Positions 21,229 through 46,281 of a stretch of DNA of 64,000 bases are shown piece after piece. The stretch is taken from positions 1 to 64,000 of the forward strand of contig JBBPEB010000014.1 of NCBI GenBank assembly GCA_039096225.1, given 5' to 3'. The notes below the pieces were generated by a model. The model worked only from the letters and a program-made list of their open reading frames with translations. It made no database searches and was not told where the DNA came from. This DNA comes from Blastocystis sp. Blastoise (taxonomy: Eukaryota; Protista; Bigyra: Opalinata). How positions within the stretch are numbered: position 1 is the stretch's first letter; the number at the start of each line of letters is the position of its first letter. Made by a program: the position numbers and the translations under genes.

Positions 21229-21259
21229 AAGATATATTTATTATTATTCTATTATTATT

Positions 21260-21403
21260 GAGGCATTGTTAGAAATACCCAAAAAATACCATAATTATTT
21301 TAACCTACCCAAAAAAAAAACGAATTGTTAGAAATACCCAAAAATATTCAAAATTTTTGTTAAAATACCCAAAAATTTTACAAAATTGTTAGAAATACCC
21401 AAA
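21260..21403 (+). repeat. MULE left terminus with four TTGTTAGAAATACCCAAAA-type motifs
   Basis: Copies at ~21266, ~21325, ~21357 (variant) and ~21386. Confidence 0.88.
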
Positions 21404-21918: not shown

Positions 21919-22943
21919 ATGTCTGTATATAGACGAAAAACACATTTTCATTATTATTTTTTAATAATTAGACAATTGATTCAAGTCAGCCACAAGAAGA
22001 TGTGGAAAATCGTTTTTGTATGAATAAGGTTGATTACAGTGACTTCAAAAATAGTGAAGAAATTAAGAAATTTGAAAATGAAGAAACATATGGAGTACAA
22101 ATTATGTACGAAAATAAGTCTAAACTCAAAAGTGATGTCTCAATTCAAATGCAAAAGCTAGGATATCCAATTAAGGTTCAAAAATCAGAAAAAGGAAGAA
22201 TTATTTACAAATGTTGTGTTTCCGATTGCCCGTTTATGCTTCATTTCCAAGGTGACGACGTTTCTGGATGGATAATGAAAAGATACTGTCATCATGACTC
22301 AACTGTATGTTATTTAATTAATTATTATAGTTTATACTTATTATTAATATAGAAATGCAATCGTTTTAATATGATTTACATTAAGCTTAACAAACAAAAT
22401 AAAATAGATTATCAAATTATTAAGACAAGTAACTAAATATAAATATAATATATAATGTATATAATATTCTATTATATACAGTGATAAAAAATCGAATTAA
22501 AAATCATCAATTTAATATAAGGTATATATATATATCAATATATAAATTGTGAGAGAGAAATCTATACATTGAATAAAGAAGGAAAAAGAGGAAAATAAAT
22601 ATATAGAGAGAAAAAAAATGAAATACAGTAGTATATGTATGTGAAAAGTGTTATATATTAATTCAATGTATGAGAGTAATAGAAGAAATATCCACCTATA
22701 TATATAGAGAAAGGAAGATTATATAATATATACAGAGAGAAAGAAAGAAAGAAAAATTCTATTATATATATAGTAAGAATGAAAGAAAGAAACATTTATG
22801 AATATATAAAGAGAGAACGACAGATATATATATATAGAGAGAGAGAGAGAAAGCGATAGAAAAAAATATCTAATATATATATATATATTGAGAGAGTAAG
22901 AGATGGAAGAGATAGAGAGAGATGCATAGAAAGAAGCAAAGAA

Positions 22944-23004
<61 letters not shown>

Positions 23005-25276: not shown

Positions 25277-25569
25277 TATTTTTTAAATGATAAGTCTATG
25301 TATATACTTATTATAATCTATAATACATATTAATTTTTTTACATTCCTAATAATATAAAATATTTTTAATTAATCATATTTAATATAAATGTCTTCTTAT
25401 TTATAAGATCATTGTTTTGTTATTGATTCAAATATAATATCATATATGTCGTTGATATTGCAGATATTCATATTAAAGAGACTAAGACTAATAAAAAAGA
25501 ATACTCATCAACGGATATAAATCCAAAATGAAACCAGCTAGAGTAATATGTATTACAAATTATTGCATA

Positions 25570-27218
25570 TGCAAATAAATGAAAGAGGACAAGAATAAGA
25601 AGGAGAAGGAGAAGGACAAGGACAAGGACAAGGAGCAGAAGAAGAAGGATAGGATAAAGATAAGAAGAAGGATAAGGATAAGGATAAGAAGAAGAAGTAG
25701 AAGGAGAAGGATAAAAAGGACAAAGATAAGGATAAGGATAGGAGAAAGAAATGACAAGAAGAACGATAAAAAAAGAGAATGGCAGAAATAAAAGAAAAAG
25801 AAGGAGAAGGAGAAGGAGAACAAGAAGGAAAATAAGAATAAACCAAGAATAAACATAATAAGGAAAACATCAATAGAAGGTAAGGATAAGTAGAATGAGA
25901 ATGATTAGAAGTAGAAGCATAAGAATAATAATACGAAGAAGACGGAGAAAGAGAAGCATATGTGGGAGTAGAAGAAAAAGCATGTGAATAAAAATGGAAA
26001 AAGAAGAAACTAAAAAGAGAATAGAAGGAGAGGATCAAAATATGAATAAGAAGGAGAAGGATAAGAAGGATAAGAATGACAAAGAGAAGGAGAATAAGAA
26101 AGAAAGAACGAGAAAGAGAAGAAGGAAAAAAATAAACAGAAGAAGAAAGAGAAGGAGGAGAAGAATGAGAAGAAAAAGAATAGGAAGGAGAATGACAAAA
26201 AAAAACAAGAATGACAAGAATGGCAAAAGGAAAAAGGAGAAGAAGACAAATTATAGAAGGAGGAGAAGAAGAAAAATTATAGAAGAAGGAGAAGAAGAAA
26301 GATTAAGAAGAAGGAGAAGAAGGAAAAGGAGGAATCAAAAGAAGGAGAAGGAGGAAGGAGAAGAAGATGAAAAAATAAAATTATAAGAAGAAAAAGTAGA
26401 AGAAGAAAGAGAAAGAGAAGAACCACAAAGAAAAGGGGGAGAAGAAAGAAATTATAGAAGTAGAAGAAGGAAAAGAAAAGAGAAAAAGGAGAAAGAGAAT
26501 AAGGACAAGAATAAGGTAAAAGTAAAAGTAAAAGAATCAATAGAAGAAAAAGTATGAGAAGAAGAATATTGAAAAGGAGATAGAGAAGTAGACGAATAAG
26601 TTGAGATAAAATGAGAAAGAAGAAGAAATAAAAGTATGGTAGTAGAAACAGAAGTAGAAATAGGTAGAAATAGATGGAAAAGGAAAATGAGAATCAGTAG
26701 AAGAAGAAGAAGAAGAAGAAGAAAATGAGAAAGAGAAGAAGAAGAATGAGAAATAGAATATAGAAATGAAATAGAAGAAACAAGAATGAAAGAAGTAGAA
26801 GAAGAAAAAATAATACTAATAATACGAATGTGAATGAGAATAAGAAGAAGAAATAGAAGAATAGCAATAATGGAATGAAAATGAAAAAAAAAAGAAGAAG
26901 AAAGAGAAATAGAAAAAGAAGAACAAGAAGTAGTTGTAATAGAAATGGATGTAGAAGCATAAAAAAGTAGTAGAAGCAAAAGTAGGAGTAAGAGTTGAAG
27001 TTGGAGTACAAGCGAAGTAGAATAGAAATATAAGTAGAAATATAAGTAGAAGAATGAGAAGTAGTATTAGTAATAGTGTAGAAGTCGAAATGGAAGAAAA
27101 AAATAACAGTAAGTAGTAGTAGTAGAAATATGAGTAGAAGAACAAGTATAAATAGAAGAATAAAGGAAAGAAGGAAAGAAGCTGAAGTAGAAGAAGTATA
27201 AGGAAAAGAAGGTAAATA

Positions 27219-27251
<33 letters not shown>

Positions 27252-30200
27252 TAAGGAAAAGAAGGTAAATATAAGAATAATAATAATAATAGTAAGGAGA
27301 AGTAGTAAAAAAGAAGAAACAGAAGAATAAGGAGGAAGAGGAAATGAGATGAATAAAGAAAAGTAAAAAGAAGTAAAATATTGAGAAATAGAACGAGAAG
27401 TAAAAGAATAATAAAAAACAAACTTTAATAAGTATGGATAGAAGAAAAAGAAAAAGAAAAATAATGAGAAATAGAATAAAGAGATTGAAAATGATAAGAA
27501 AAAGGAAAGCATGAAAGATAATAGGAATGAGAATAAGAAGAATAAGTAGAAGTATAAGGAGGAGTATAAAGAAAATGGAGATAAGGAGTAGAAGCAGAAG
27601 GAGAAGCTAAGGTTGAAGAAAAATAGAAAGGATGATAATAAGAAAGATAAAAGAAATAGAAGGAAAACGAGAGTGTGAAGTAAAATAAGAATAACAAAAA
27701 TAAAAAGAAGCAGAAGGAAAACAAGAAGAACTAAATGAAAATGAGGAGAGGAAGAATTTGAAAAAGAAGAAATATAATAAGAAGAATAAGAACAAGAAGA
27801 GGAATCACAAAAATAAAAAGAAAGATACTACAAATAAAAAGAATACTGAGGAAGACAAAATATAGAGTAAAAAATGATATAGAAGAAGCAGAAGATAGTG
27901 AATAAGGAGAAGAAGAAGATAAAGTAGAAGAAGAAGTAGATCGAGAAACAGAATAAAGGGAAATGAAAAGTAGAATGAAAATAAGTAAGAAAATAGGAAT
28001 ATATAAATAAGATGTAGAAGAAAAATTGAAGCAAAATGAGACGAATTTAGAATAAAACAGAATACGTTAAATTAGAAGAATATGAAGAATAAAAAATGAG
28101 AAGCATACAAGTAGAATAATGAGAAATAGACAAGCCTGTAGAAGAAAGGCAAAAAAAGAAGAATCTGGAAAAAACAAGAATAAGAATAGAATAAGAATAA
28201 GAATAAGAATAAGAATGGAATAAAAACTGACTGAGAAAGTACTAGAAGTAGTAGAAGTAGTAGTAGTGTAAATAGACTTAGACTTAGACTTAGAAGCAGA
28301 AGGAGAAGCACAATTATGTATGTATAAATAGAAGAAACAAAGTATAAGTAAAATAGGAAAAAGAAAAGGCGAATAGATGAAGTATAATTATAAATATAAA
28401 TAGAAGAATGAGAAAGAGAATATGAATAAGAATAGATGAAGTATAATTATAAGTACAAATAGAAGAAGAAATAGAAGAAATAGAAGAAAAATATAATAGG
28501 AATAAGGAGTAGAATTAAAAGAGTCTAATATAAATAATAATAAAAAGAAGTTATACTAGTATAAGTAGATGTAAAATGATGAATATAAGTTGATAAACAA
28601 GAAGTACTAGAAGTAGAAGAATAAGTAGAAGTAGAAGAAATCGAATTATAATAGAACTAAAATAAAAAGTAGACGAAAAAGAGTAGAAGTTCAAATTGAA
28701 GAATAAGAATTAATAGTAGTACGAGTACATGTAAAAGGAGAAGTGAACGTAGAAGGAGAAATAGTCATAAGTAGTGGTAGTAGAAGTAAAGAACAAGAAG
28801 AAGAAGAAGAAGGAAAACTAGAAAGTATAAGTAGAACTAGAAGTAGAAAAGAAAGTAGAAGTAGACGTGCATGTATAAATAAAAGTAAGAATAGAAGCAC
28901 GAGTACAATGATAAGTAGAATTAGAATAAGAATAAATACTAGTAGAAAGAAATAGGAATAAGAATAATAACAAGTAGTAATAGAACTAGTAGTAGTAGTA
29001 GAAATTGGAATAAGAATGAAAGTAAGTAATAATATAAGTACAAGTAAACAAAAAGTATAAGTACAAGTAGAAATAGAAGAATAAAGTAATGAATGAAAAA
29101 AAAACTGAAGAAGACGAAGTATAAGGAATAGAATAAGAACAGAATAAAAAAGGAATGAAAATAATAATAATGATGTAAAAACGTGAAAAGAAGGAGAAGA
29201 ATAAAGAAAAGGAAGAGAGACTATATAATTAGAAAGAGAATGAGAAGTAAAATAAGAAGAACAAGAACTAATATAAATAGAACGATAATAAGAAATAGAA
29301 GGAGAAGGAGAATATCAAAAAGAGAGTGAGAATGAGAAGAAAAAGGAAAATATGAAAGATAATAGGAATAAGAATAAAAAGGATAAGTAGAAGTACAACG
29401 AAGAGAAAGGAAAATGAAGAGAAGAAGTAGAAGCAAAAGGAGATGATGATGTTGAAGAAAAACATGTTGGAGAATAATAATAAACCACATAAGGAGAAAC
29501 AAAAGGAAAAGAAGAATTTGATGTAAAATAATAAGTATATGAAAAAAGGAGAAGCAGAAGGAAAATGAGTAGACTTAAACTGAGAATACATGACAGAGAA
29601 TTTGAAAAAGAAGAAATAGGATGAGAATAGTAGGAAAAAGAGAGGAATGAGAATAAGAAATAGAATGACGATACAAATAAGAAGAAGAAAAAGAAAATAT
29701 AGAGAAAAAAGATGATATAAAAGAATGAGAAGATAGGGAATAAGAAGAAGATAAAAAGTAGAAGAAGAAGAAGAAGAAGAAGAACCAAAGCTAGAACTAG
29801 AACAAAGAGAAGGAAAAGTAGAAGTTTAAAAAAGAAAGATAATAGGAGAAAAAGTAAGAATTAGAATAAGATATAGAAGGATAGTGAGAAGAATTTGGTG
29901 AAAATAGAATACGCAAAAGTAGAAGAATATATATAAATAAAAAGTGAGAAGTATACCAGCAGAGTAAGGAGAACTAGACAAGAAAGTAGATACAAGTAAA
30001 AGAAGAATTTGGAGAACAATAAGAATAAGAATATGACTAAGAGAGTAGTAGTAGAACCATAAGAGAAGTATGAATAGATGTAAAAGTATAAATGAAGTAG
30101 AAGGAGAACAATAAGTATGAGTAGAACCATATGTATAAGTATAATGAGAATAAGAATAAAATAAGAAAGATGACAATATGAAGTGTTAGTAGAAGGAAAA

Positions 30201-31925
30201 TGAGATAAATAGTAGAATAAAAAGAAGAATATTAAGGAGAGAAAGTTTAGAAGTGGAAGGAGTACAATAAAAATAAGAATGAAGTGAATAAGAATAGGAA
30301 TAAGAAGAATAAAAAGGAGAAATGAAAATAGAAGGAGAAGAAAGAAGATATAAAGGAGAATAATAATAAGTAGAAGGAGAAATAAAAAATAAGTTTAATA
30401 AGAATGAAAATAAGAATAATAGAATAAATTGAAGATAGAAAAGTATAAGAAAAGAAGGAAGAAGAAGGAAAGTGATAAGATGAAGAATTAGAATAAATAA
30501 TAAGAAAATGAAGAATACGAATAAGGAGTATGATAAGCAGAAGTGAATAAAAAGAATGAGAAATGGAAGGACAATACTAATAATAATAATAAGAAAAAGA
30601 AGATACAAAAGGAGGAGGAGAAGAATGAAAAAAAGTTAAGGCTAACTAGAAGCAGAATAGTATAAAGATAATGATAATAAGATTGTAGAACAAGAAATAG
30701 AAGTAGAATAAGAAGAGAAATGATTAGGAAGTATAAGTAAAGTAAGAAGAGAAAGATATCATGAATAAGAAGAGAAAGATATCATGAATAAGAAGAGAAA
30801 GATATCATGAATAAGAATAAGAATAAAAAATGAAGTAGAAATACAAGCAGAAATAGAAGTAGAATAAGAGTGTAAAAATAAGGTGAATAAGAATAAAATG
30901 TGGAAGATGAAGAAGTAGTAAAAGTTGAGTGAATAGTAAAGAGAAATGGAAAGTAGACACTAAGGCTTATGAAATGAAAACAAAGGAATAACACCAGAAA
31001 TAAGAAGTAGAATTAGAATAAGAAGGAAATTAAGAATGAAATGCTGAAGTAGAAGAAGAATTAACAGGAGACAAGAATAAGTAGAAGGCGAAGCAGAACG
31101 AGAATAAGCGTAAAAATAATAATAATTAAAGAATAATATCAATTAAAAGAAGGAAAATAGGAATGAGAAGTAAAATAGAAATTACAATAAAAAAAATAAG
31201 TAAAAGTAACTAGATAAGCAGAATGAAAATATGAATAGTATGATGAAGGGAAAGGAGAATGAGAAAGTCGCATATGAAGGAAAGCGAGAAGTAGCACGAG
31301 GATAGTAATAAAAATAAGAAAGAGAAATTAAAAAATAAGGAGACGTGGAATAAGAAGGAGAAAGTGAGATATATGGAAAAACTAAATAAGAAACAAAATA
31401 TTAAGTAAAATAAGAAGTAAAAAAAGAAGTAAAAAAAGAAGTAACAACAATATATGAAAAAGAAGAAGTTGAAGAAGTTGAAGAAGGAGAAGAAAAATAA
31501 GAATAAGAGAAATATATCTAAGAATAATAAAAAGAAGATGACAATAACAAGGAGAAGTAAATTTACAAGGAGAAAAAAAAAGAAAGGAAACATAAGTGAA
31601 GAAGGAGAATAAGGAGAAGTAGAATAAGATGTACAGGTGAAGAAGAATAAGTAGTAGACGTAAAGTAAGAAGAATAAGAATAAGAATGAAAGGATAAGAA
31701 GAAGGATAAGAAGAAGAAGAAGAAGAATGAAAAGGAAAGGATAATTAGAAGTATAATAATAAAATATAATAGTAGAATTCGTGAAGAGGTAATAGTTATG
31801 AAAACAAATAAAGAAAAATTAATATCTATACAAAAAAGAAGAAAAAGATGTAGTAAGAAGTGTATTAGAATGAAGAATGAAGAATGAAGAATGAAGAATG
31901 AAGAATGAAGAATGAAGAATGAAAT
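25570..31925. repeat. Purine (G/A)-skewed low-complexity tract, ~6.4 kb, inside the MULE
   Basis: Mosaic of GAA, GGAGAA, AATAAG and GTAGAA microsatellites with very few C; ends in (GAATGAA)n at ~31868-31924. Confidence 0.9.
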
Positions 31926-32169
31926 TTTGTAAACCAAAAAATTTAATAAATAAAAGAATAATAAATTGCAACTTTCCTAATAGACTAATAATATTTGTAA
32001 TCAATTTTTTGTTTTATAGAAGAAACAATAAAAATACCACTAGGTCTAAAGAATATATAATATTATAAAAATAGAATATTAATAATTATAATATAAAGAA
32101 AAAAATAACATATATATTATTAATAGTCAGTTAAAACAAACTAACTATATTATTAAATACATATATACC

Positions 32170-32925
32170 TTAATAAAGACTTGAATCATCGCAATCTGAT
32201 TCCCAAGTTGTGCTTAAATACGCTAAGATTCTATAAATAAATACGTAGAATAAATTAATAAAATTAATTAAAGTATAAACATATTAGAAAAACAACAAGA
32301 TAGAAAAATAGGAGCTAATTCAATTATAAAAAGTATAATATAAAATTAAAAAAAGATAGGGATGCTATTAGAATGATAGTGATGTATTAATAGCATAGAC
32401 AAGAAATAGATATAGCAAAAAATAAACAAAATGAGAAAATGAAAAATATCTATATACCTTAGATTCATCAGTATTGTTTACCAAGACCTTTTGAATTGAT
32501 CTGAAACCAGATGAAGTTTGTTTTGAGCATATAAACAAGAAATAACCCATTGATCAACTGATTACTATATAAAATTAAATATTTGAAGAGAGTAAACTAT
32601 ATAATATATATATTTATAACTAGAAAACATACATAGATTCATTTTATATGCTTATAATGAAAATATATGAAATAAATCAATATTTGATTTTCAAGAAATA
32701 ACCATTCTGAGGATGGAAACAGAGGAAAAACAGCCTAAATAGCGGAATTAATCTCTTCTATAGAAACTTTTTTGGGTTTCAGTGAACAAGTTTTAAAAAT
32801 AATTTCTAGAGATTCAAAGTATGGTATAAAAAGTCTTCTTTGATATGGTCCCTATTCTTGGAGTCTTTCAGAATCACTTAAATCTTTGGAAAACCGTATT
32901 CAGCTACGGCTTAAATGAACTCCTA
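32170..32925 (-). pseudogene. Degenerate spliced cargo gene fragment in the MULE, product unknown
   Basis: Exon-like blocks (~32170-32230, ~32458-32564, ~32700-32922) bounded by minus-strand AG/GT. Best frames read ...PYQRRLFIPYFESLEIIFKTCSLK...VFPLFPSSEW and SVDQWVISCLYAQNKLHLVSDQF, with in-frame stops. Confidence 0.4.
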
Positions 32926-33039
32926 AAAAAGAATATTTTTTAAATATTATTATATGGATTATTTGCTTATTTAGAAGGTTATTTTATTATTTATATTTAT
33001 ATTATATTTTATTAGGTAGATTATTATAGATTAGGCTTG

Positions 33040-33480
33040 AAATGAATCCAGATAATAAACCAATTAGTGATTCATTCTTTCACGTATATACTTATTTGAT
33101 TTACCATTATTTATATAGGTTTAGAAACATGATTTAGAGAGCCCGGTGGAGTTGGCTACAATATTGGAAGAAAACGCAATGATCGGAATTTCCTCTTTAA
33201 GAATATTCTTTGGTGTATGTTCTAGTGGTATATTATTTTGTTTTTTGTTTGTATATTTAATTATTTATTTAGGAAATTCAAAAGAAAAAAGTAATTGGTC
33301 TCCATCTACTAAGAAAATTGATGTCTAGGTCCTTCTTTTGATTTTTATTATTTTATTTTTTTATCAGAAGTATATATTTATGTTATTAATGCTATATTGT
33401 ATCTAATTATATAGAAATGGCAAGTGATTATTGTTTTGGAATTTTTGTAACTTTTCGATTTCAGCACAATTATCGAGTCC
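33040..33480 (+). pseudogene. Degenerate spliced cargo gene fragment in the MULE, product unknown
   Basis: GC-richer blocks separated by GTAT...TAG intron-like segments (33085-33118, ~33215-33272); no stop-free joined frame found. Confidence 0.35.
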
Positions 33481-34364
33481 TTAAAAGTATATAAATATAT
33501 TAAATAATTATTTTTTTCTATAGATATATGGAGTAAATTGATATGGTTATATATACAAAAAAAAATACTAGAAGAATATGGCTAAAAAGTATATATTTTT
33601 TTATTTTTATATTATTAAAATTATATATATTTGTTTAATTAAATTTGTATATTGTAGTTATTTATTTTTGTTATAACTGAGGCTCTAACATTGATATATG
33701 GTTCAAATATATATATATATATTTTTATTATTTATAAATTCTTAATATTTTATTAATTTATTATATTATTTTTCTATATAGGACTATTAATTATCATTCT
33801 TTTATTATAGTTTATATATATATATATGTATTATTTATTTTCGATATATTTTATTCTTATTCATATATATAGTATTATTAAGCTATGTACTCATTAGCTT
33901 CTCTACATCAATACTATTATGTGACTAGGTATATTATATATATATTTAATTATTAGCATATTATTTTCTATTACTTCTTAATATATATATATATATATTT
34001 ATATATTAACTAGTATTTTTATATAGAGAATGTGACGTTTCCCTTATGTTATAAACTTCATGGTCATCAATTTTTATATCTAAGGTATATAGTTTTTATA
34101 TGTAAGTAATTGTTTTATTGTAGTATATTGTTTCACATTATTTTTATATATTATTCTATTTTCCGTACAATAATTTTTTATTTTTTTTATATAATTTATA
34201 TTATGTACCTATAATTACTAATAATATCCTATTGTTTATATTTCTGTTATTCATGTCTCTATAGTTTTATTAGTTATATAAAAATATAACTAGTAAAACT
34301 GTAATTACATATATATATTATATAGGTGTTATATAAATATACGAATGTTGCTTTAGTTGAAGAA

Positions 34365-34449
<85 letters not shown>

Positions 34450-35337
34450 GTTATAGACTTTTATTGTATTCTTTTTATATTATTATTTTATACATTTTTC
34501 TCTCTATATAACATATTCACAGATATATTTACCAAATATATACTCTTTAGAAAATTGATATATGTTTTATTTTGGAAGTTGATAATATATACTAGAATCA
34601 GTTCATATCAATTGTTTATTCTTAAACTTTATATATATATATATATATTATTTATCAAAGTCAAAGTTATATATAAATAGAATAATGAAGAATTATCTAT
34701 ATATAGTGGTCTTTAGTTCTATTACTACATTATTTTTATGTATTTAAGGTATATATAAATATATTATATATATACTTTTATATATACTTATTATATAAAT
34801 ATAAACTTATAGACTTATATATAGTAATATATCAGTTATCCTTTTATTTTTCTCATGAGTTTTTAAGTATATAGTCTTTTTATCTTATTATATATATAAT
34901 ACATTTTTTATAATTGACACAAAAGGTAATATTATTTGTATATATAATTTTATCTCAACTATTCTTCTATTTTATTCTTTTATATCACTTTTTCTTTCTA
35001 TAACTATATTATGTATTATCATTTTATAATATAATTTGTTTATAGTTAATTATGTATATATATGTAGTAACAGTAATAACTCTTCTTTTTATCTCTTTTG
35101 TTCAATTATACTAGTATATTTTCTATGATAATATATATACTTTGTATTTATCTCCTTTTATATATATTATCTATTTATTTTGATACTAATTATATATACA
35201 CTTAGTGTTATGTATACTACATTTTCTTTTTGTTTATAATACTATACTAATATCATTTTTATTATATATAGGATTAAGGATATATATAATTGTTTTGAAT
35301 GATTTACTTTTGTATTATGTTAAACCTTATTTTCTTG

Positions 35338-35377
<40 letters not shown>

Positions 35378-36096
35378 TTTTCTTTATATTTTCCAGCTTT
35401 CTTTTCTATTATATACATTTATACTCACTATAGTGTACTATTATTAATATATATAGTTTGTGAAGATATTAAATAGATTCTACGTAAAGAGTATGTATTT
35501 TAATTGTTTTAATACATATACATAATATGTTCCTATGTTATATTTAAATATATATATTTTTTACTTTATATATATATTTTTCTCATAATTACATATATGT
35601 ATATATTCATATATATATATATATAGACTTGGTATTCCCTTAATTAATTCATGCCGTCTTATTCATTCATTTTATATATATAGTCTATAATCAGCTTTTA
35701 TGAATTATTACAAATAATGTATACAATCCTTTTGTATGTATTTTATTTATATTTATATAGCTTGCTATGTAGTATTTTCTATTATAACAATATAATGTGT
35801 TTATTTTATTTATATATATATTAATTTTTTTTTTAATCTATATATAGAACGTATCTTTAGCTTATCTTCTATGTTCGTATACAACTTAATATAGATAGTA
35901 TATATTGTATATATTTATTATATATATTGTTTGCTAATATTCTATTTTTAACTTTATTCTTAATTACATTATATTCTATTGTATATTGAAATAATCTTTT
36001 TATTCTACATGTTTTTATTATTTAGGTTAGTATTAATAGGTGTAATAGAGTATATATATATATAATTACAATATTTTTATAGTCTCTTTTCTTCAA

Positions 36097-36129
<33 letters not shown>

Positions 36130-36148
36130 TATTCATATAATTAATATT

Positions 36149-36217
36149 CCTTAGACTGAATATGGTCAGTAGCAATCATTAATAGATTGCTATCAGGTTC
36201 AATTCCTGATCTAAGGT
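36149..36217 (+). ncRNA. tRNA-like cloverleaf RNA, copy A (non-canonical; nominal anticodon UAA)
   Basis: CCTTAGA/TCTAAGG acceptor stem; CTGA-ATATGG-TCAG D-arm; TAGCAATC-ATTAATA-GATTGCTA arm; TCAGG-TTCAATT-CCTGA T-arm (B-box); T6 run at 36229-36234. Confidence 0.8.
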
Positions 36218-37220
36218 TGTATACTATATTTTTTATAAAAAAATTTAAATGTTTTTTCCCTATAGGTATTCTCATTCATTAGAACCAATATGAATAAATA
36301 CATTGAGTTTCATGCAATTGAATCAACTCTATACGTCGTTAGTCGCTCTTTTATAATAATTTTAGATACCTTTACTTAAAACCAAACACATTCACAATTA
36401 CAATCACCCAAAATTATCTAGTCATTATTTTGTTGAGTTATGTATCCTATTCATCAATTTTACACACAAATAAAAAATAAATATTCATCAATAATATCTT
36501 GAAGTCTATAAACACGCAATATATTATTTGTTTATACTCTTAAAAGGCATTTCTACTGTTTATATTAATATGATTGACACTAAGAATCATTTCTAACCAA
36601 CTTTAAAAACTTTTGAAGAACCTTAACAAATTTACATTACCTAAAAAACTATTATAATCAACTTTGGCTTATACGAGTCATGATTAAATTTAAATTATTA
36701 ATAGAAATTCATAATAAAGGCATTCTATCTCAACATATCACCAAGAGAAATCAATTATGTTTGTAACTTCCCTAAAATTAAATTAATTACTAAAAGACGT
36801 ATTTTAATTAATGTAGAATTCAAATTCAAACACACATAAACTCATCATTTCTGACAATTTTACACATTTAGACAATCTAGTGAGTATCACATAATCAACT
36901 AATTCTTGTTGTCTTCATCAAGTCTAACGATTTCCTTATGACAAGAAGCATCAATTTTATTTTATTCAACACTCTATAAATAATTAATCAATTAACTAAT
37001 TTTATTTACTTAAATACATACTCCAATAACAACAACAAGACATCAGGAGTGAGAATAACTGATTAAACTATTTAAATAAAATAATTAATAATAAAAAGTA
37101 GAAATATTAGGATTTTAATAATTTTTAATAAGTTAATTTATAGTGAAGTTTCAATAATCATATAAAAAATATGATTAATTTAGCTTTTGTATGTTCTAAG
37201 CATATATCTATCTATATATA

Positions 37221-37585
37221 GTCCCTAGGAGTATATTAGAGTACCTTCCAGTCTCCATTGGCAGATTGATCTAAACTGGTATGTTCTCTTTCTCTATTAT
37301 GAGCTAATCTAGGTGATGTAAAGTGGTTGTACTAGATGGTCAGCTATTGTGTCGTGGTTATAAATGGGATGATGTGACGTCACCATATAAAACTATTTCT
37401 TTAGGTTTTATCAATGAGTGGGAAATGCTTGGCTATGTTAACTGAGCGTTGCTTGAAACTTTCAAAAAATCAATTGGTCAAATGTCTAAACAGATTTGTC
37501 TTGAATCATACAGAATCATGATCTATTCACATAATCACTACATCTACAATTCAAATATTCATATTTGAAGTTACTTGGTTTAACT
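37221..37585 (+). pseudogene. Degenerate spliced cargo gene fragment in the MULE, product unknown
   Basis: Intron GTATGT...GCTAAT..CTAG (~37279-37312) joins P*EYIRVPSSLHWQIDLNW to *CKVVVLDGQLLCRGYKWDDVTSPYKTISLGFINEWEMLGYVN*ALLETF in one frame with isolated stops. Confidence 0.5.
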
Positions 37586-37738
37586 CATATTCTGATTCTG
37601 AGATGTATATATTTTCTACATTTTTTTTATATAAATATAATTATATAATTATATTAATGTTTATATAGGTTGTTATATAGCTATTAAATCTAGTTCTTGC
37701 TTTTCTTGTCACTAAATTCTTGGTTCTTCTCTTTTATG

Positions 37739-37769
<31 letters not shown>

Positions 37770-37924
37770 TATTATTAACTTCTTATGTTTTGATTTTATA
37801 ATATAAATTTCTTAATTTTTGAAAATTATTTCTATTTATACATATTATTAGTTTCTTCTATGTACTTATTTGAAGTTTTTATTAATATTAATTTATGCAC
37901 TTTTTTCTTTTTTTTTAATTATAT

Positions 37925-37961
<37 letters not shown>

Positions 37962-38129
37962 CTATTTCTATATATATTTGGTTTTCTTTTTGTCTATATT
38001 TGCCTTCTTTTCCATTTTATTCTTATTAATTTCTTTGTTATACTTTATATTTTTCTTATAGTCATCGTGTTGATTCGGGTAATTGTTACTACTATTAATA
38101 CTACTCAATATCACATTTCATTATATAAT

Positions 38130-39950
38130 ATACCTTTTTTCTTTAGTTCTTACTTATCATTCTCCTTACATTCTTCTTATCTTTCCTTTTTGTGTTCTCC
38201 TTCTATAATTACATCTTCTCTTCATTTCCACCTCTATATCTTAATCTTCTTGTTCTTCTTCATTTTCTTCTTATGTCATTACTTCCTTTTCATATCTTTC
38301 CACTTCTACTTTTCTATTCGCTATTCCTTTTAATTCTTCATCTAGACGTTCTTTCTATATTCCTTTTTCTTTTATATATCCTTATTCCCCTTCTCCTTTT
38401 CTGTCTCCAATATTCTTTTCCTACTCGTTCTTCTTCATCTATTTATCCTTATGCTTCTATATCTTGTATATACCATTCTTTTGCTTCTCAATCTCAATCT
38501 CCTTCTCTCAATCTCTTCTGTATCTCTTCTTCTTCCTCTTCTTCTATATATCCTTATTCCCCTTCTATATCTTATATATATCTTTATTCTTCTTCTATAT
38601 CTTATATATATCCTTCATCTTCTATATATCCTTCGTCTTTATATTCTTTTTCTCTCTATATATCCTTCGTATATATATTCTTTTTCTCTCTATATATCCT
38701 TCCTCTGCATTCCTTCTTCTATTTGCCATTATTCTTCTTATACATTTTATCTATATCATTCTCCTCCTATGTTTTCTATTTTTTCTATATATCCTTATTC
38801 TTATCTTTCCTCTTCTATATATCGTTTTTCTTCTATATATCTTATTTTTGCTTCTTCTTCTATATATCTTTCTTCTTCTTCTATTTATTGTTCTTATTCT
38901 TCTGTATCCTCTATTTATCATTATTTTCCATAGTATTCTTCTACTGTATCTTCTTCTTGTCTCTTTCTTCTTCTTAAATATCTCCTTCTTCTCCTTCTTT
39001 TCTTCTATATCTTCAATATACCTTTCTTTATCTATATATTTTGATGTTCATTATTTCTCTATATATCTTTATTCTCCATATTCTTCCGTATCTTCTTCTT
39101 CTTTTTATGCTTCTCTTTATTCTCCTTCTATATATCTTTCTTTTCCTTCTTTTCCTTCTCAGTCTCCTTCTCTTCATTTTATCATTCTCTTTCTCTCTAT
39201 CTCTATCTCTTTCTATTTCTATATCTTCTATATGTACTTTTTCTTCTTCTTCTTCTATATATCATTATTTTCCTCCTCCTCCTACTCTTCCTTCTTCTTT
39301 TATCATCATTCTTCTACTTCTTCTATCATTTCCTTCTTCGATTTCGATATCTCTATATATCATTTTTCTCCTTCGTCTTCTCCTTCTTTACTCTTTATAT
39401 TATTCTAATTTTATTCCTTTTCATCTATTTCCTCTTTATCTCAATATTCTCTCGATTTATTACACATAATATCAATTATATATATATATATATATAATCT
39501 TTTATACTCTTTTTCTTTCATCATATACTATCTTTTTTTCCTACATTTACACTTGTACTTCCTATGTGTACTCTACTTATATTTTTATTTCCTTCTTAAT
39601 TTATTCTCCCTTGTTCTTCTTCTAACTCTCTTCTCTATCTGTTTTCTCTTCTTCTCCTATACATGACTTTTTATTATCCATCTATCTTTCTTTTCTTCTT
39701 ACCTTCTTATCTTATTTTTTACTCGCTTCCTATTCTTATTCTTCTTCTTTATATATATGCTTTTTATTCTCTATCCTATTAACTAACTCCTCCTTCTTCT
39801 TCTTCTCATTTACTTAATATTTTTCTTTTTCCTAATTTATTTTCCTATATTCTTCATATTCATGTTTTCATTTTTTTATATTCAATTCCTATCTTTTATC
39901 ATCTTATATCTATATATATACTTCTCTCCATATTTAAACTATTTCTATCT
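38130..39950. repeat. Pyrimidine (C/T)-skewed low-complexity tract inside the MULE
   Basis: TTC/TCTATATATC-type mosaic, almost devoid of G. Confidence 0.88.
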
Positions 39951-40080
39951 ACTATACTAATTAATATAGTATTTATTTTTATTAATAAAAAGATTTTATC
40001 CTTTTTATTTCTTATTTATACTTATTATTTTATATGTTTCTTGTTTATATATTTAATTTATATATTAAAATAATTTTTTC

Positions 40081-40124
<44 letters not shown>

Positions 40125-40257
40125 GCAACAGTAATATGTATTCTATTTGATAAATATATATGAAAGAGATAAGTATATATTTATATATCTATATTATTGA
40201 TTCATCTTTTTTAGATATATATATTAAATATTGTATTTTATTATTATTTATTATTAC

Positions 40258-40326
40258 TCTTATGCTCTATAAGGTGAGAGGCTATCATAATTCGATAACA
40301 ATCAGGTTCAACTCCTGACATAAGTC
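40258..40326 (+). ncRNA. tRNA-like cloverleaf RNA, copy B (non-canonical; nominal anticodon AAU)
   Basis: CTTATG/CATAAG acceptor stem; CTCT-ATAAGGTG-AGAG D-arm; GCTATC-ATAATTC-GATAAC arm; TCAGG-TTCAACT-CCTGA T-arm; T9 run at 40347-40355. Paralogous to copy A with compensatory changes. Confidence 0.75.
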
Positions 40327-41543
40327 ATTCTATATATATATATATATTTTTTTTTATTTAATAAACGTTTTAATTATATGTTCTTTTTACACTTATTAAT
40401 GTATTTATTAAATTATTTATAGCTCTTCATCCTTCAAAACTTCATAGTTTCTGAAATGAGTTGTAATCTGTTTTATTCTCAAAAGTGTAGCTTATTCAAA
40501 ATATGTTTGAATTGAGTTAAATACAGTTTTAAAACTTAGATTCATTTTTTATTTTCAAAATATACTCAAATACAGAGTATATTCAGCAATCATTAATACT
40601 TTAACGACTGTAGTTTATTATTTTTAACTGAATTCTGGTCAGTATACTCAATACAAACAACTAAGTACAATACATACGTATTCATGATTTTTAAACAACA
40701 TTTTTCCATTTCGACATTTACTTGATCCATTATAAAACTATTTGTCCTTTTGATATAGTAAAGAAAAACGAATACCATATACCAAACAAAACGTTTTAAC
40801 TTGAATCTCGTCATCTATTAAATATTTTTCTTAATCAATTCACAGTTCATACTCTTAAAACAGTTATTTAAGATTAATATTTATGTATTTGTCCTTATAC
40901 AATATTTTCATGACACTGTAATAATATATATGAAAATTAAAAGAGTCAAGAAATCTGTTAATTATCAAAAAATAAGTTCTATTTACTAAAATCATATTTA
41001 TAAGATTTATAAACTTATACCATATAAAAACATAGCTCTTATATAAAGTATTGGCTGAATTAGTTTATTTGTAAGTAAATTAAAAGTATGTTATATAACG
41101 TAATTTTAGGTTACTCTTTTTAATCAGATTTATTTCATAGCTATTTATGGTTTATTTGTCTGTTAATCTTATTTTTTAAAACAATTACAGACAATTATAT
41201 TATGATCCTTGTCTATTAAGTTATTTTATTGAATTAATAGTATAAATAAAAGTTATATAACAAAATAAATGTATATATTGATTAAAATAAGGAATGAATA
41301 TAAATAAATAAAAATAGATAAAATTGCCAAAAAGCAAATTCTTAGAATTATATAGTACAATAGACGAACTTCTAATAGAAACTTAAAAATCGATTGATTG
41401 GATCAAATAGTCAAATCCTAACGTCATAATATGAATTATTCTTTTCATTTTTTATTAATTTAAATTCTTGAAATACATCTAATAAACACGGTTATTATAT
41501 AAATTAATACGATTGGACAACGAAATCAAAATGTTAACAGAAA

Positions 41544-41629
41544 TTTTTGGGTATTTCTAACAAATCATACAAAAAATTGGGTATGTATACAAATCAATAG
41601 GGAAATCTGGGTATTTCTAACATTTTTCC
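41544..41629 (-). repeat. MULE right terminus with inverted TGGGTATTTCTAACA motifs
   Basis: Copies at ~41548, ~41578 (degenerate) and ~41608; ends ...CATTTTTCC. Confidence 0.88.
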
Positions 41630-42265
41630 ATTATTATTCTATTCTATTATTATTCTATTCTATTTATTATTCTATTCTATTATTCTATTCTAATATTATT
41701 CTATTTATTATTATTATTCTATTTATTATTCTTTTTATTATTCTTTTTATTCATTTATTCAAATTTTTTTTTATTTATTTATTTTATTTATTTATTTATT
41801 TTTATATTAAAAATCTAACCCTAACCTAAAAATTATTTTATATTAACCCTAATCTATTATTTTAATATTCAATTTAACACTAATCTATTATTTTTTATAT
41901 TAAATCTAAAACCATTATTTTATATTAAACCTAACCCTAACCCTCCTAAACCCTAAATTATTTTATATTCATTTTAAATCATAACCCTAAACCACTAATA
42001 TATATATATATAATTAAAATTATTTTATTTTATCAAATATTATTTTATTATTATTATTATTTTATTATTATTATTTATAATATAAATAATATGTTTACAA
42101 AAATTTAATAATAAAAAATAATATAAAAATTTTTTTATAATTTTTATAATAATAATAATAATAATAATAATATAAATAAAATGTTATATATAAATAATTA
42201 AAAATATTAATAATAAAAAGAATAATAAATAAAAAAATAAATACAAATAAAGAAAAATAAAAAAA

Positions 42266-42384
42266 AAAGAACAGCACTAGGACTTCACGGCGAGTCCCCC
42301 ACACCGCTACTATCCTAGCTCGAAGTGGCTTAGCTTCCTAGATCAGACGGGTTAGGGCGTTGTCCACTTGATATGGCCGTTCTC
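42266..42384 (-). rRNA. 5S rRNA copy 13
   Basis: Same sequence as copy 1. Confidence 0.95.
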
Positions 42385-43042
42385 AAGATATATTTATTAT
42401 TATTCTATTATTATTCTATTCTATTATTATTCTATTCTATTTATTATTCTATTCTATTATTCTATTCTAATATTATTCTATTTATTATTATTATTCTATT
42501 TATTATTCTTTTTATTATTCTTTTTATTCATTTATTCAAATTTTTTTTTATTTATTTATTTTATTTATTTATTTATTTTTATATTAAAAATCTAACCCTA
42601 ACCTAAAAATTATTTTATATTAACCCTAATCTATTATTTTAATATTCAATTTAACACTAATCTATTATTTTTTATATTAAATCTAAAACCATTATTTTAT
42701 ATTAAACCTAACCCTAACCCTCCTAAACCCTAAATTATTTTATATTCATTTTAAATCATAACCCTAAACCACTAATATATATATATATAATTAAAATTAT
42801 TTTATTTTATCAAATATTATTTTATTATTATTATTATTTTATTATTATTATTTATAATATAAATAATATGTTTACAAAAATTTAATAATAAAAAATAATA
42901 TAAAAATTTTTTTATAATTTTTATAATAATAATAATAATAATAATAATATAAATAAAATGTTATATATAAATAATTAAAAATATTAATAATAAAAAGAAT
43001 AATAAATAAAAAAATAAATACAAATAAAGAAAAATAAAAAAA

Positions 43043-43161
43043 AAAGAACAGCACTAGGACTTCACGGCGAGTCCCCCACACCGCTACTATCCTAGCTCGA
43101 AGTGGCTTAGCTTCCTAGATCAGACGGGTTAGGGCGTTGTCCACTTGATATGGCCGTTCTC
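43043..43161 (-). rRNA. 5S rRNA copy 14
   Basis: Same sequence as copy 1. Confidence 0.95.
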
Positions 43162-43821
43162 AAGATATATTTATTATTATTCTATTATTATTCTATTCTA
43201 TTATTATTCTATTCTATTTATTATTCTATTCTATTATTCTATTCTAATATTATTCTATTTATTATTATTATTCTATTTATTATTCTTTTTATTATTCTTT
43301 TTATTCATTTATTCAAATTTTTTTTTATTTATTTATTTTATTTATTTATTTATTTTTATATTAAAAATCTAACCCTAACCTAAAAATTATTTTATATTAA
43401 CCCTAATCTATTATTTTAATATTCAATTTAACACTAATCTATTATTTTTTATATTAAATCTAAAACCATTATTTTATATTAAACCTAACCCTAACCCTCC
43501 TAAACCCTAAATTATTTTATATTCATTTTAAATCATAACCCTAAACCACTAATATATATATATATAATTAAAATTATTTTATTTTATCAAATATTATTTT
43601 ATTATTATTATTATTTTATTATTATTATTTATAATATAAATAATATGTTTACAAAAATTTAATAATAAAAAATAATATAAAAATTTTTTTATAATTTTTA
43701 TAATAATAATAATAATAATAATAATATAAATAAAATGTTATATATAAATAATTAAAAATATTAATAATAAAAAGAATAATAAATAAAAAAATAAATACAA
43801 ATAAAGAAAAATAAAAAAAAA

Positions 43822-43940
43822 AAAGAACAGCACTAGGACTTCACGGCGAGTCCCCCACACCGCTACTATCCTAGCTCGAAGTGGCTTAGCTTCCTAGATC
43901 AGACGGGTTAGGGCGTTGTCCACTTGATATGGCCGTTCTC
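43822..43940 (-). rRNA. 5S rRNA copy 15
   Basis: Same sequence as copy 1. Confidence 0.95.
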
Positions 43941-44601
43941 AAGATATATTTATTATTATTCTATTATTATTCTATTCTATTATTATTCTATTCTATTTAT
44001 TATTCTATTCTATTATTCTATTCTAATATTATTCTATTTATTATTATTATTCTATTTATTATTCTTTTTATTATTCTTTTTATTCATTTATTCAAATTTT
44101 TTTTTATTTATTTATTTTATTTATTTATTTATTTTTATATTAAAAATCTAACCCTAACCTAAAAATTATTTTATATTAACCCTAATCTATTATTTTAATA
44201 TTCAATTTAACACTAATCTATTATTTTTTATATTAAATCTAAAACCATTATTTTATATTAAACCTAACCCTAACCCTCCTAAACCCTAAATTATTTTATA
44301 TTCATTTTAAATCATAACCCTAAACCACTAATATATATATATATAATTAAAATTATTTTATTTTATCAAATATTATTTTATTATTATTATTATTTTATTA
44401 TTATTATTTATAATATAAATAATATGTTTACAAAAATTTAATAATAAAAAATAATATAAAAATTTTTTTGTAATTTTTATAATAATAATAATAATAATAA
44501 TAATATAAATAAAATGTTATATATAAATAATTAAAAATATTAATAATAAAAAGAATAATAAATAAAAAAATAAATACAAATAAAGAAAAATAAAAAAAAA
44601 A

Positions 44602-44720
44602 AAAGAACAGCACTAGGACTTCACGGCGAGTCCCCCACACCGCTACTATCCTAGCTCGAAGTGGCTTAGCTTCCTAGATCAGACGGGTTAGGGCGTTGTC
44701 CACTTGATATGGCCGTTCTC
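44602..44720 (-). rRNA. 5S rRNA copy 16
   Basis: Same sequence as copy 1. Confidence 0.95.
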
Positions 44721-45380
44721 AAGATATATTTATTATTATTCTATTATTATTCTATTCTATTATTATTCTATTCTATTTATTATTCTATTCTATTATTCTA
44801 TTCTAATATTATTCTATTTATTATTATTATTCTATTTATTATTCTTTTTATTATTCTTTTTATTCATTTATTCAAATTTTTTTTTATTTATTTATTTTAT
44901 TTATTTATTTATTTTTATATTAAAAATCTAACCCTAACCTAAAAATTATTTTATATTAACCCTAATCTATTATTTTAATATTCAATTTAACACTAATCTA
45001 TTATTTTTTATATTAAATCTAAAACCATTATTTTATATTAAACCTAACCCTAACCCTCCTAAACCCTAAATTATTTTATATTCATTTTAAATCATAACCC
45101 TAAACCACTAATATATATATATATAATTAAAATTATTTTATTTTATCAAATATTATTTTATTATTATTATTATTTTATTATTATTATTTATAATATAAAT
45201 AATATGTTTACAAAAATTTAATAATAAAAAATAATATAAAAATTTTTTTATAATTTTTATAATAATAATAATAATAATAATAATATAAATAAAATGTTAT
45301 ATATAAATAATTAAAAATATTAATAATAAAAAGAATAATAAATAAAAAAATAAATACAAATAAAGAAAAAAAAAAAAAAA

Positions 45381-45499
45381 AAAGAACAGCACTAGGACTT
45401 CACGGCGAGTCCCCCACACCGCTACTATCCTAGCTCGAAGTGGCTTAGCTTCCTAGATCAGACGGGTTAGGGCGTTGTCCACTTGATATGGCCGTTCTC
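45381..45499 (-). rRNA. 5S rRNA copy 17
   Basis: Same sequence as copy 1. Confidence 0.95.
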
Positions 45500-46162
45500 A
45501 AGATATATTTATTATTATTCTATTATTATTCTATTCTATTATTATTCTATTCTATTTATTATTCTATTCTATTATTCTATTCTAATATTATTCTATTTAT
45601 TATTATTATTCTATTTATTATTCTTTTTATTATTCTTTTTATTCATTTATTCAAATTTTTTTTTATTTATTTATTTTATTTATTTATTTATTTTTATATT
45701 AAAAATCTAACCCTAACCTAAAAATTATTTTATATTAACCCTAATCTATTATTTTAATATTCAATTTAACACTAATCTATTATTTTTTATATTAAATCTA
45801 AAACCATTATTTTATATTAAACCTAACCCTAACCCTCCTAAACCCTAAATTATTTTATATTCATTTTAAATCATAACCCTAAACCACTAATATATATATA
45901 TATATAATTAAAATTATTTTATTTTATCAAATATTATTTTATTATTATTATTATTTTATTATTATTATTTATAATATAAATAATATGTTTACAAAAATTT
46001 AATAATAAAAAATAATATAAAAATTTTTTTATAATTTTTATAATAATAATAATAATAATAATAATATAAATAAAATGTTATATATAAATAATTAAAAATA
46101 TTAATAATAAAAAGAATAATAAATAAAAAAATAAATACAAATAAAGAAAAAAAAAAAAAAAA

Positions 46163-46281
46163 AAAGAACAGCACTAGGACTTCACGGCGAGTCCCCCACA
46201 CCGCTACTATCCTAGCTCGAAGTGGCTTAGCTTCCTAGATCAGACGGGTTAGGGCGTTGTCCACTTGATATGGCCGTTCTC
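46163..46281 (-). rRNA. 5S rRNA copy 18 (array edge)
   Basis: Same sequence as copy 1; its spacer is the most divergent. Confidence 0.95.

Follow-up and report, generated by a model that had tools for sequence, protein, structure and literature searches.

Linker-less tRNA-like cloverleaves carried as a multi-copy family by DNA transposons of Blastocystis sp. Blastoise

Two 69 nt elements of a Mutator-like transposable element (MULE) of Blastocystis sp. Blastoise, designated A and B, are, as judged from sequence comparison, real and homologous cloverleaves that lack the linkers of tRNAs and are kept by purifying selection and compensatory substitution. The family to which they belong is genome-wide, with 160 or more copies distributed among several types of transposon, and is not MULE-specific. 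The explanation that we prefer, with a probability of roughly 0.45, is that A and B are selected, non-decoding tRNA mimics carried as DNA-transposon cargo, and that they are most likely small tRNA-type transcription units of RNA polymerase III (Pol III).

The transposon and its two cloverleaves

The DNA analysed (the window) comprises positions 1-64,000 of the forward strand of contig JBBPEB010000014.1 in assembly GCA_039096225.1 of Blastocystis sp. Blastoise, a protist from the tortoise gut. Both cloverleaves lie inside a single element of 20,370 bp (21260-41629; Table 1) that is inserted in a 5S rDNA spacer and has seven identical copies in the genome; this 20.4 kb MULE is recently active. 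Its assignment to the MULEs follows from a PF10551 DDE transposase, a SWIM finger, 22 nt imperfect terminal inverted repeats (TIRs) and 9 bp target duplications, those of MULEs measuring 9-11 bp. ORF 23019-24938 matches Pfam PF10551 and PF04434, and the NCBI protein WA158_002995 (Blastocystis sp. Blastoise, 853 aa) maps to 21972-22427, 22998-24818 and 24986-25273; the protein collection searched contained no relatives of the transposase from outside this genome. The motif of the left TIR is repeated subterminally (repeat family D19). A first-pass annotation, made from the letters of the window, had described A and B as transposon-borne, and the TIRs and the target duplications in four copies bear this out: the duplications are unambiguous in the C20 and C14 copies and in that of the window, and the duplication of the C13 copy, which sits within a (TA)n run, resembles the TA repeat and has no exactly definable bounds. 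The two cloverleaves are not at the termini: the MULE end is 1.3 kb away from one and 5.4 kb from the other. The ORFs of the pyrimidine-rich tract upstream of B are low-complexity only, and those beside A and B are just 40-88 aa long with no gene signs. Pack-MULEs, which capture fragments of host genes (PMC4858842, PMC1947982), likewise carry non-transposase cargo, although here the cargo is a selected small structured RNA module common to other transposon classes and not a fragment of a coding gene.

Table 1. Positions in the window of the MULE, its cloverleaves and associated features
Feature	Position	Strand	Description
Left target-site duplication, 9 bp (ATTATTATT)	21251-21259	.	In 5S spacer; same 9 bases again at 41630-41638
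Left TIR of MULE	21260-21281	+	17/22 match to reverse complement of 41608-41629; inner 15 perfect
MULE transposase gene	21972-25273	+	MULE and SWIM domains, at least three coding blocks; Pfam and NCBI protein mapping
Purine-rich (GA) low-complexity tract inside MULE	25500-32000	+	GC skew +0.67 to +0.81, AT skew +0.5 to +0.64; repeat families D1-D4
Conserved 22 nt directly 5' of A, candidate start region or leader	36127-36148	+	Near-invariant among six diverged copies
Cloverleaf A, 69 nt	36149-36217	+	Stems 7, 4, 8 and 5 bp; no linkers; loop ATTAATA; discriminator T; 97.3 bits
T6 run, candidate Pol III terminator, 11 nt 3' of A	36229-36234	+	All A variants have T6-T8 at +11 to +12
Pyrimidine-rich (CT) low-complexity tract upstream of B	38000-39900	+	GC skew -0.78, AT skew -0.50; repeat family D6
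Cloverleaf B, 69 nt	40258-40326	+	Same family; D-stem 3' strand TGAG; 6 bp anticodon stem; loop ATAATTC; 83.9 bits
T9 run after variable (TA)n 3' of B	40347-40355	+	From sequence
Right TIR of MULE	41608-41629	-	Pairs with left TIR
Right target-site duplication, 9 bp	41630-41638	.	Copy of 21251-21259

A and B have the positions and letters first given for them, and they align without gaps over all 69 columns. The D-loop GG, T loop, 7+5 stack of acceptor and T stems, U33, U37, absent linker and variable loop, and downstream T runs were all correctly described at the outset. Of the five compensatory pairs counted between A and B in the first-pass annotation, four stand in a common register (acceptor pairs 6-63 and 7-62, D-stem pair 10-19 and anticodon-stem pair 26-40), whereas the fifth is found only in the shifted register used there for B; under the family register the fourth D-stem pair of B is a T-T mismatch. 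Each cloverleaf combines a 12 bp acceptor/T stack with the elbow-forming letters of tRNAs, namely GG in the D loop and those of the T loop. A folds much better than shuffled sequences do (z -4.8), which is not true of B alone (z -1.1). At pair 25-41 B of the window has C-A, a mismatch absent from its relatives, and because the youngest, seven-copy MULE carries this anticodon-stem mismatch, a perfect B is not required for recent transposition.

A covariance model of the family finds only A (97 bits) and B (84 bits) in the window, the next match on the plus strand scoring 12 bits, and on the minus strand beyond the purine-rich tract a scan with the model revealed no additional cloverleaf. A twice-repeated module of 4.1 kb was also considered and was rejected, since 32000-36148 and 36218-40257 have no similarity and neither do the stretches that follow A and B.

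Conservation and compensatory change

Diverged copies of the MULE were compared around A as far as A+1.5 kb and around B from B-1.5 kb. Only 6 of the 69 columns of A are variable, compared with 946 of 1663 flank columns (57%; Fisher p = 2e-16), and for B the figures are 15 of 69 and 1033 of 1879 (Fisher p = 5e-8). Expressed as identity, the cores are 91-97% conserved and the flanks 71-82%. Both A and B are local minima of variability, and the only 69 nt windows with fewer variable columns are ones that overlap them. This is so even though the G+C content of the cloverleaves (36-38%) differs from that of the flanks (about 20%). The conserved segment of A extends from -22 to the T6 run at +11, and the microsatellite that precedes the conserved 22 nt is not alignable among the same six diverged copies.

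The pattern of substitution is that of a maintained fold. Among 36 distinct members of the family 93.9% of the stem cells are paired, compared with 38-43% when the partners are slid, and 11 of the 24 pairs have changed on both sides; RNAalifold, unaided, recovers 22 pairs, all of them within the 24 that were modelled. Wobble intermediates are extant at pair 24-42, which passes from GC through GU to AU within one lineage of type A, and at pair 29-37, which passes from CG through UG to UA in a second A lineage. The T arm (17 nt, including the B box) has only four single-base changes across the 36 members and is the only helix without any covariation. The letters of the anticodon loop drift, with 14 different strings in the 36 sequences, some of them 5-6 nt long. 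With regard to strand, 18 G-U and 10 A-C cells are too weak a signal, and the minus strand folds with almost equal stability, but the covariance model gives 97 bits on the plus strand and 25 on the minus.

Relation to tRNAs and distribution in the genome

Although ARAGORN calls B a tRNA-Ile (aat), the family departs from tRNAs in several respects. An Rfam search at E<=10 returned no family, RF00005 included, for A, B or ten other subtypes, whereas RF00005, with a covariance-model threshold of 29 bits, gives scores of 60-75 bits for genuine tRNAs of the genome. Between their helices tRNAs have nucleotides 8-9, nucleotide 26 and a variable loop of at least 4 nt as hallmarks; the unpaired bases between the four helices number zero in types A and C and two (AA) in B. 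Position 37 is U and two variants among the 36 sequences are missing U33, so that the tRNA rule of a purine at 37 together with a fixed anticodon is not followed. The determinants of the elbow are present, with GG in 35 of 36 members, the T loop TTCAAYT in 33 of 36 and the 7+5 acceptor/T stack kept. The original view that these are neither ordinary nor simply decayed tRNAs is upheld by the lack of an Rfam tRNA match and by stems maintained through compensatory change, and on the sequence features seen here (14 anticodon-loop strings, U37 and no Rfam tRNA match) A and B are non-decoding. A short acceptor/D linker, a longer anticodon stem and a short variable region are known in tRNA-Pyl and in animal mitochondrial tRNA-Ser(UCN), and all three are shared with the family; however, these tRNAs decode with a fixed anticodon, whereas the family has its 14 loop variants and U37 and lacks both linkers.

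At least 150 matches of 70 bits or more were found in the genome with the covariance model, and an 18-mer of the T arm containing the B box occurs exactly 163 times, compared with 0 times for the reversed control. The expectation of a MULE-encoded family with matches confined to MULE copies did not hold: 97 of the 150 best matches are to other subtypes and sit in other repeats. Twenty-five of these 97 are within 10 kb of a Helitron RepHel match (expected, 3.6% or less) and four are near a MULE transposase match; carriers of subtypes C and D were inspected within 200 nt. The proposed link to residence in a Pol III array is likewise unsupported, the window's copy being the only one of the seven identical MULE copies in a 5S array. 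One further copy lies 13 kb from a lone 5S gene, and among the tRNA genes listed none is near the remaining identical copies. Two pattern scans of JGI metagenomes yielded no relatives outside this genome.

Candidate roles of the cloverleaves

The sequence around A favours a Pol III unit. The B box, GGTTCAAYTCC, is GGTTCGANNCC-like and exact in 33 of the 36 distinct members, and a run of at least six Ts is present within 15 nt in three of five unrelated flank contexts (A, type D and C-minor), compared with a background of 3.7%. In the 5S genes of this genome the terminal run is T10. Of an A box (TRGCNNAGTGG-like) there are only counterparts of A14, G18 and G19, its 8-11 part being replaced by the D stem abutting the acceptor stem. 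C-major, the most abundant subtype, has no T4 run within 50-60 nt, and in other copies of B growth of the (TA)n has moved the T run to 20-48 nt or more than 60 nt downstream. T runs and a TATA-like sequence upstream arise easily in DNA of 80% A+T. The partial A box, the lack of a near T run in C-major and the drifting T run in B were counted against a Pol III unit, as were the weak strand signal of the wobble pairs, the mismatch in the B of the youngest MULE and the fixed order of A then B, which is compatible also with a pair of cutting marks in a single long transcript.

If A and B are Pol III units, the almost unvarying B box of the T arm would be the binding site of TFIIIC, the conserved stretch of about 22 nt upstream would contain the start of transcription, and a T run would end it, the T6 at +11 for A and a run beyond the (TA)n for B. 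RNase P and RNase Z would next shorten the transcript to about 69 nt, a stable RNA unusable in translation that might occupy a tRNA-binding host factor, or the locus might be held open via Pol III and TFIIIC. A more far-reaching proposal, which we regard as speculative, is that members of at least two DNA-transposon superfamilies, and perhaps of three, share and exchange a dedicated tRNA-mimic RNA gene that they need, a Pol III RNA that would hijack the tRNA pathway, for example by shielding the transposons from silencing or by occupying a tRNA-binding defence factor.

The closest parallels in shape are mascRNA of MALAT1 and the MEN-beta 3' element of vertebrates (RF01684), in which a small non-decoding cloverleaf is recognised by RNase P and RNase Z (PMC8457004). 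The Blastocystis family shares with mascRNA the non-decoding cloverleaf, the acceptor/T stack and the elbow, but it has no match to the mascRNA-menRNA model RF01684 at E<=10, no linkers at all and an 8 bp anticodon stem, and it consists of at least 160 transposon-borne copies where mascRNA is released by RNase P and RNase Z from the 3' end of a single long nuclear non-coding RNA of the host; the nearby T run in three of its five lineages suggests that it may have Pol III transcription of its own. Plant mitochondrial t-elements and mitochondrial tRNA punctuation provide a second parallel, in which tRNA-like folds are cutting marks that set the ends of neighbouring RNAs (PMC1920247, PMC3790967). 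These systems are organellar, whereas the A/B family is nuclear and transposon-borne, and a cutting role for it is hypothetical. Such a role is nevertheless the alternative that survives best, and we consider it possible if somewhat unlikely: the cloverleaves would be cis-acting signals in long Pol II transcripts of the transposon, with RNase P cutting 5' and RNase Z 3' of each, such that flanking non-coding RNAs acquire defined ends (for example, a 4.04 kb RNA, 36218-40257). The best-kept parts, the 12 bp acceptor/T stack and the elbow, are what these two enzymes measure; A precedes B on a shared strand in 22 of 22 pairs, with a spacing that is mostly 4.0-4.5 kb (about 4.1 kb); B is downstream of the pyrimidine-rich tract; and neither C-major nor B has a nearby T run. 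The cutting enzymes, however, need neither the enriched runs of six or more Ts nor the conserved 22 nt 5' of A, and they need little of the D and anticodon arms, which are also kept by compensation. Furthermore, there is no ORF or known gene between A and B, and the long transcript is hypothetical.

The near-immutability of the T arm and its lack of covariation would also be accounted for by a site that acts as DNA, with the B box recruiting TFIIIC as an 'extra TFIIIC' site that serves as a chromatin boundary or an aid to transposon targeting and the RNA fold being irrelevant, and the position of the window's copy in a 5S array is in keeping with this. We think it improbable, as it leaves unexplained both the 94% pairing and the 11 pairs with compensatory changes in the remaining three helices; moreover, the whole 69 nt is conserved and not 11 nt alone, a single one of the seven identical MULE copies is in a 5S array and no listed tRNA gene is near the others.

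A neutral origin, in which captured or decaying tRNA genes, SINE heads or NUMT-like copies look conserved because the transposon copies are young, fits the ARAGORN call and the stem mismatch in the window's B, and the seven copies, being identical, are uninformative. It is quite improbable given that the cores exceed the flanks in identity among diverged copies, that the substitutions are compensatory and that the family scores nothing with the RF00005 model that detects the genuine tRNAs. An origin from SINE heads or organellar tRNAs was raised in the first-pass annotation as an objection, but there is no sign of the former in the copies compared or of the latter among the matches listed. The flanks of A and B align unbroken between diverged MULE copies, and all copies have continuous MULE flanks with no tail and no target duplication of their own. 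Two small tRNA-dense contigs, C9 and C12, are probably the organelle genome, as judged from tRNA density and size, and DNA and covariance-model searches of the whole assembly gave no listed match on either, with all 23 B candidates and 40 of the 143 A candidates scored. The family resembles tRNA-derived SINEs in being a multi-copy, genome-wide tRNA-related module with an internal B box, but it lacks a LINE-type tail, poly(A), its own target duplication and independent insertion, it is spread by DNA transposons, and it keeps by compensation a full cloverleaf that SINE heads do not need.

A cruciform or cloverleaf of single-stranded DNA used in transposition is very improbable, for although the minus-strand fold is nearly as stable and Helitrons do use DNA hairpins, the family occurs in cut-and-paste MULEs and near Helitrons, which have no common single-stranded intermediate, its elements are not terminal, and the tRNA-specific loop letters (GG and TTCAAYT) are strand-specific, as the plus- and minus-strand scores reflect.

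Mimicry of tRNAs is familiar in viral RNAs, in two long RNAs of vertebrates, in transcripts of organelles and in the heads of SINEs, but to our knowledge not among the conserved cargo of DNA transposons, whether cut-and-paste or rolling-circle. A literature search found no description of tRNA-like modules in MULEs, Helitrons or Blastocystis repeats, in keeping with the first-pass view of an undescribed family. The mimic, with at least 160 copies compared with at least 63 tRNA matches scored, appears to be more numerous than the tRNA genes of the genome itself. The family also has consequences for annotation: some members, such as B, are taken for tRNAs by tRNA finders, and repeat libraries will not mark them as a functional unit. 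If expressed, the family would be a tractable case of mobile DNA using Pol III and the tRNA-processing machinery, and would add many TFIIIC-type sites to a small genome. Should a tRNA-mimic gene indeed be shared among the transposons, it would provide the first example, in DNA transposons of eukaryotes, of a tRNA-mimic module that is selfish and horizontally shuffled.

Host transposon and genomic setting

The DNA examined is nuclear, very AT-rich and forms the start of contig C8 in the assembly of Blastocystis sp. Blastoise, a tortoise isolate (PMC12129017); the assembly searched comprises 33.3 Mb in 34 contigs. The window's tandem 5S rRNA gene array is split by an insert of about 20 kb, the ends of which were set by comparing the window copy with three other copies of the same Mutator-like element (MULE). 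The limits of similarity enclose 20,370 bp, ending in an imperfect 22-nt inverted repeat (17/22 matches, the inner 15 perfect) and flanked by a target duplication. In the window copy and in those on C20 and C14, 9-bp duplications stand out clearly and differ in sequence; the C13 copy lies within a (TA)n run, and the exact bounds of its duplication are not definable. Each of the four target duplications observed consists of A and T only. The landing of the C13 copy (L088/L089, G000:C13:1281300-1305300) in a (TA)n microsatellite recalls the TA-microsatellite preference of the Medicago MuTAnT MULEs (PMC4486113).

The transposase of the element is of the MULE type and carries a SWIM finger; since seven copies have identical transposase genes, the element has moved recently. 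Both 69-nt tRNA-shaped cloverleaves, A and B, had been described as transposon-borne, and they do lie inside this element with its inverted repeats and target duplication, 5.4 kb (A) and 1.3 kb (B) from its right end and on the same strand as the transposase. The window contains two diverged cloverleaf subtypes paired within one active, autonomous MULE. One of the seven identical MULEs is seemingly inserted in a Helitron RepHel gene (G000:C31:596826-618972), where the helicase match falls into two pieces on one strand, residues 3-249 (596826-597590) and 244-581 (617944-618972), separated by a gap of 20,354 bp, close to the MULE length. At G000:C10:100140-118200 a MULE transposase 39 % identical to that of the window is followed about 12 kb on by a copy of A (96 % identical) and 4 kb further by a copy of B (90 %); from this layout, either the cargo region may move between MULE lineages or two elements may lie side by side.

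Features of the window
Feature	Position	Strand	Details
Helitron Rep/Pif1-helicase ORF	2940-7685		1581 aa, intact; adjoins 5S array
5S rRNA gene array	8153-21228 and 42266-46281	minus	period ~780 bp
AAATAG hexamer array	18425-18909		81 copies; breaks 5S array between 14485 and 19553
Target duplication	21251-21259 and 41630-41638		ATTATTATT, 9 bp
MULE	21260-41629		
Annotated transposase	21972-25273	plus	853 aa
Purine-rich low-complexity tract	25500-32000		6.5 kb; GC skew +0.8
Cloverleaf A	36149-36217	plus	69 nt
Conserved block downstream of A	36364-36503		conservation 0.89-0.95 (both blocks)
Pyrimidine-rich low-complexity tract	38000-39900		2 kb; GC skew -0.78, same strand
Cloverleaf B	40258-40326	plus	69 nt
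Conserved block downstream of B	40448-40727		

Only the pyrimidine-rich member of the two skewed tracts inside the MULE precedes a cloverleaf. The Helitron ORF has at least 15 genome copies at 98-100 % identity, with two more families at about 56 % and 44 %; given its position, the 5S array holds both MULE and Helitron material.

The cloverleaf family

A and B read exactly as the first-pass annotation had quoted them, and align over all 69 columns without a gap. Four of the five compensatory pairs claimed between them hold in a shared register (two acceptor, one D-stem and one anticodon-stem); the fifth does not, since it needs the D stem of B to be drawn two bases further 3′, a register possible for B alone because the relatives of B carry A, not T, at column 18. 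Compared with shuffled controls, folding is far better for A (z −4.8) but not for B (z −1.1). ARAGORN calls a tRNA-Ile for B only, neither A nor B is matched by the Rfam tRNA model at E≤10, and their sole Rfam matches are weak antisense ones to a plastid leader.

At least 30 copies of A (90-100 % identity) and 23 of B are present in the genome. The two co-occur at 22 places, where A in every case precedes B on the strand they share, mostly at a distance of 4.0-4.5 kb (range 3.3-11.1 kb). A 4.1-kb module repeated twice was considered and rejected, the two stretches having no similarity apart from the cloverleaves. A covariance model trained on 18 variants matches only A and B within the window, searched with filters off, and gives at least 150 matches at ≥70 bits in the whole assembly; the 18-nt string of the T arm is present 163 times and its reversed control not at all. 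The representatives fall into four subtypes, none of which matches any Rfam family: A, with the 5′ start CCTTAGA; B, that of the B cloverleaf itself; C, the most frequent, whose stems of 7, 4, 8 and 5 bp are perfect; and D, with an anticodon loop of 6 nt. At G000:C4:1506833-1542674 type C cloverleaves are spaced 3.16-3.18 kb apart (two, then three consecutive), which suggests tandem units of a host repeat.

Contrary to what had been expected, the family is not confined to MULE copies. Among the high-scoring matches, 97 are neither A nor B; a Helitron RepHel match lies no more than 10 kb from 25 of these (at most 3.6 % expected), and a MULE transposase match no more than 10 kb from only 4. Nor did the proposed link to Pol III arrays emerge clearly: only the window's MULE copy sits within a 5S array, the 5S genes among the 47 matches scored of 239 candidates being those of the window array, one C20 array and a lone C13 gene, 13 kb from the C13 MULE copy.

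Conservation and covariation

In diverged A-B regions the flanks are 71-82 % identical to the window copy and the cores 91-97 % (window positions 35534-35582 were left out of later searches and alignments). Among six aligned copies of A, 6 of 69 core columns vary, compared with 946 of 1663 ungapped flank columns (Fisher p 2e-16); for B, in seven copies, the figures are 15 of 69 and 1033 of 1879 (p 5e-8). The only less variable 69-nt windows in either alignment are those overlapping the cloverleaf. These islands are notable because the cores have a G+C content of 36-38 % amid DNA of about 20 %. The conserved block of A runs from 22 nt upstream to a T6 run 11 nt downstream. The two short blocks of high conservation further downstream stand amid diverging non-coding cargo, and neither contains an ORF or an Rfam match.

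Among 36 distinct sequences, standard pairs occupy 93.9 % of stem cells, falling to 38-43 % once the partners are shifted by 1-3 columns; the loss of pairing in homologues, named beforehand as evidence against the family, is not seen. Changes on both sides occur in 11 of the 24 pairs, and RNAalifold unaided recovers 22 pairs, all within the 24. Compensation is seen inside single transposon lineages with the wobble intermediates extant, pair 24-42 of type A passing through GC, GU and AU and pair 29-37 of a second A-bearing lineage through CG, UG and UA; in type B, pair 24-42 has changed from GC to AU. The T arm has no covariation, with four single-base changes in the 36 sequences, and the anticodon loop, with 14 different strings, is the least constrained part.

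Possible modes of action

For how the cloverleaf would be produced and used, we favour by inference a small unit transcribed by Pol III. The family has a perfect B box with hardly any variation, and a stretch of about 22 nt just upstream of A is kept. In three of the five unrelated flank contexts (A, D and C-minor, a context of type C) a run of at least six T begins no more than 15 nt downstream, against a background of 3.7 %, so that this terminator test leans towards Pol III units; the 5S genes of the genome end directly in T10. However, only part of the A box is present, no T run lies close to the commonest subtype, and in B a (TA)n whose length varies comes before the T run; in DNA of 80 % A+T, signals of this kind carry little weight.

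On the main rival reading, the cloverleaves would mark RNase P/Z cuts within long transposon transcripts. The fixed order and spacing of A and B and the pyrimidine tract ahead of B speak for it, although processing enzymes have no need of the conserved stretch upstream of A. A purely DNA-level TFIIIC site leaves the compensation in three helices unexplained, and a neutral relic does not account for the conservation islands. An origin as SINE heads is not supported, as MULE sequence is continuous on both flanks in all copies and the cloverleaves have no tails or duplications of their own. An organellar origin is not supported: A and B have no listed match (for A, among the 40 of 143 candidates scored) on C9 and C12, two small, tRNA-gene-rich contigs that are probably the organelle genome; genuine tRNAs elsewhere in the genome score 60-75 bits.

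The nearest functional analogues are mascRNA (at the MALAT1 and MEN-beta ends), the t-elements of plant mitochondria and SINE heads, none of which takes in this family by sequence or defining features. Full-text literature searches yielded no account of a tRNA-like module in any MULE, Helitron or Blastocystis repeat; the Blastocystis genome paper treats repeats in summary only, and tRNA is unmentioned (PMC12129017). The first-pass observation is confirmed, and its interpretation as an undescribed MULE-encoded ncRNA family is partly supported. Carried by active transposons, the cloverleaf is under selection and strand-specific, has the look of an RNA-level structure, retains the tRNA elbow and 12-bp stack, and is non-decoding.
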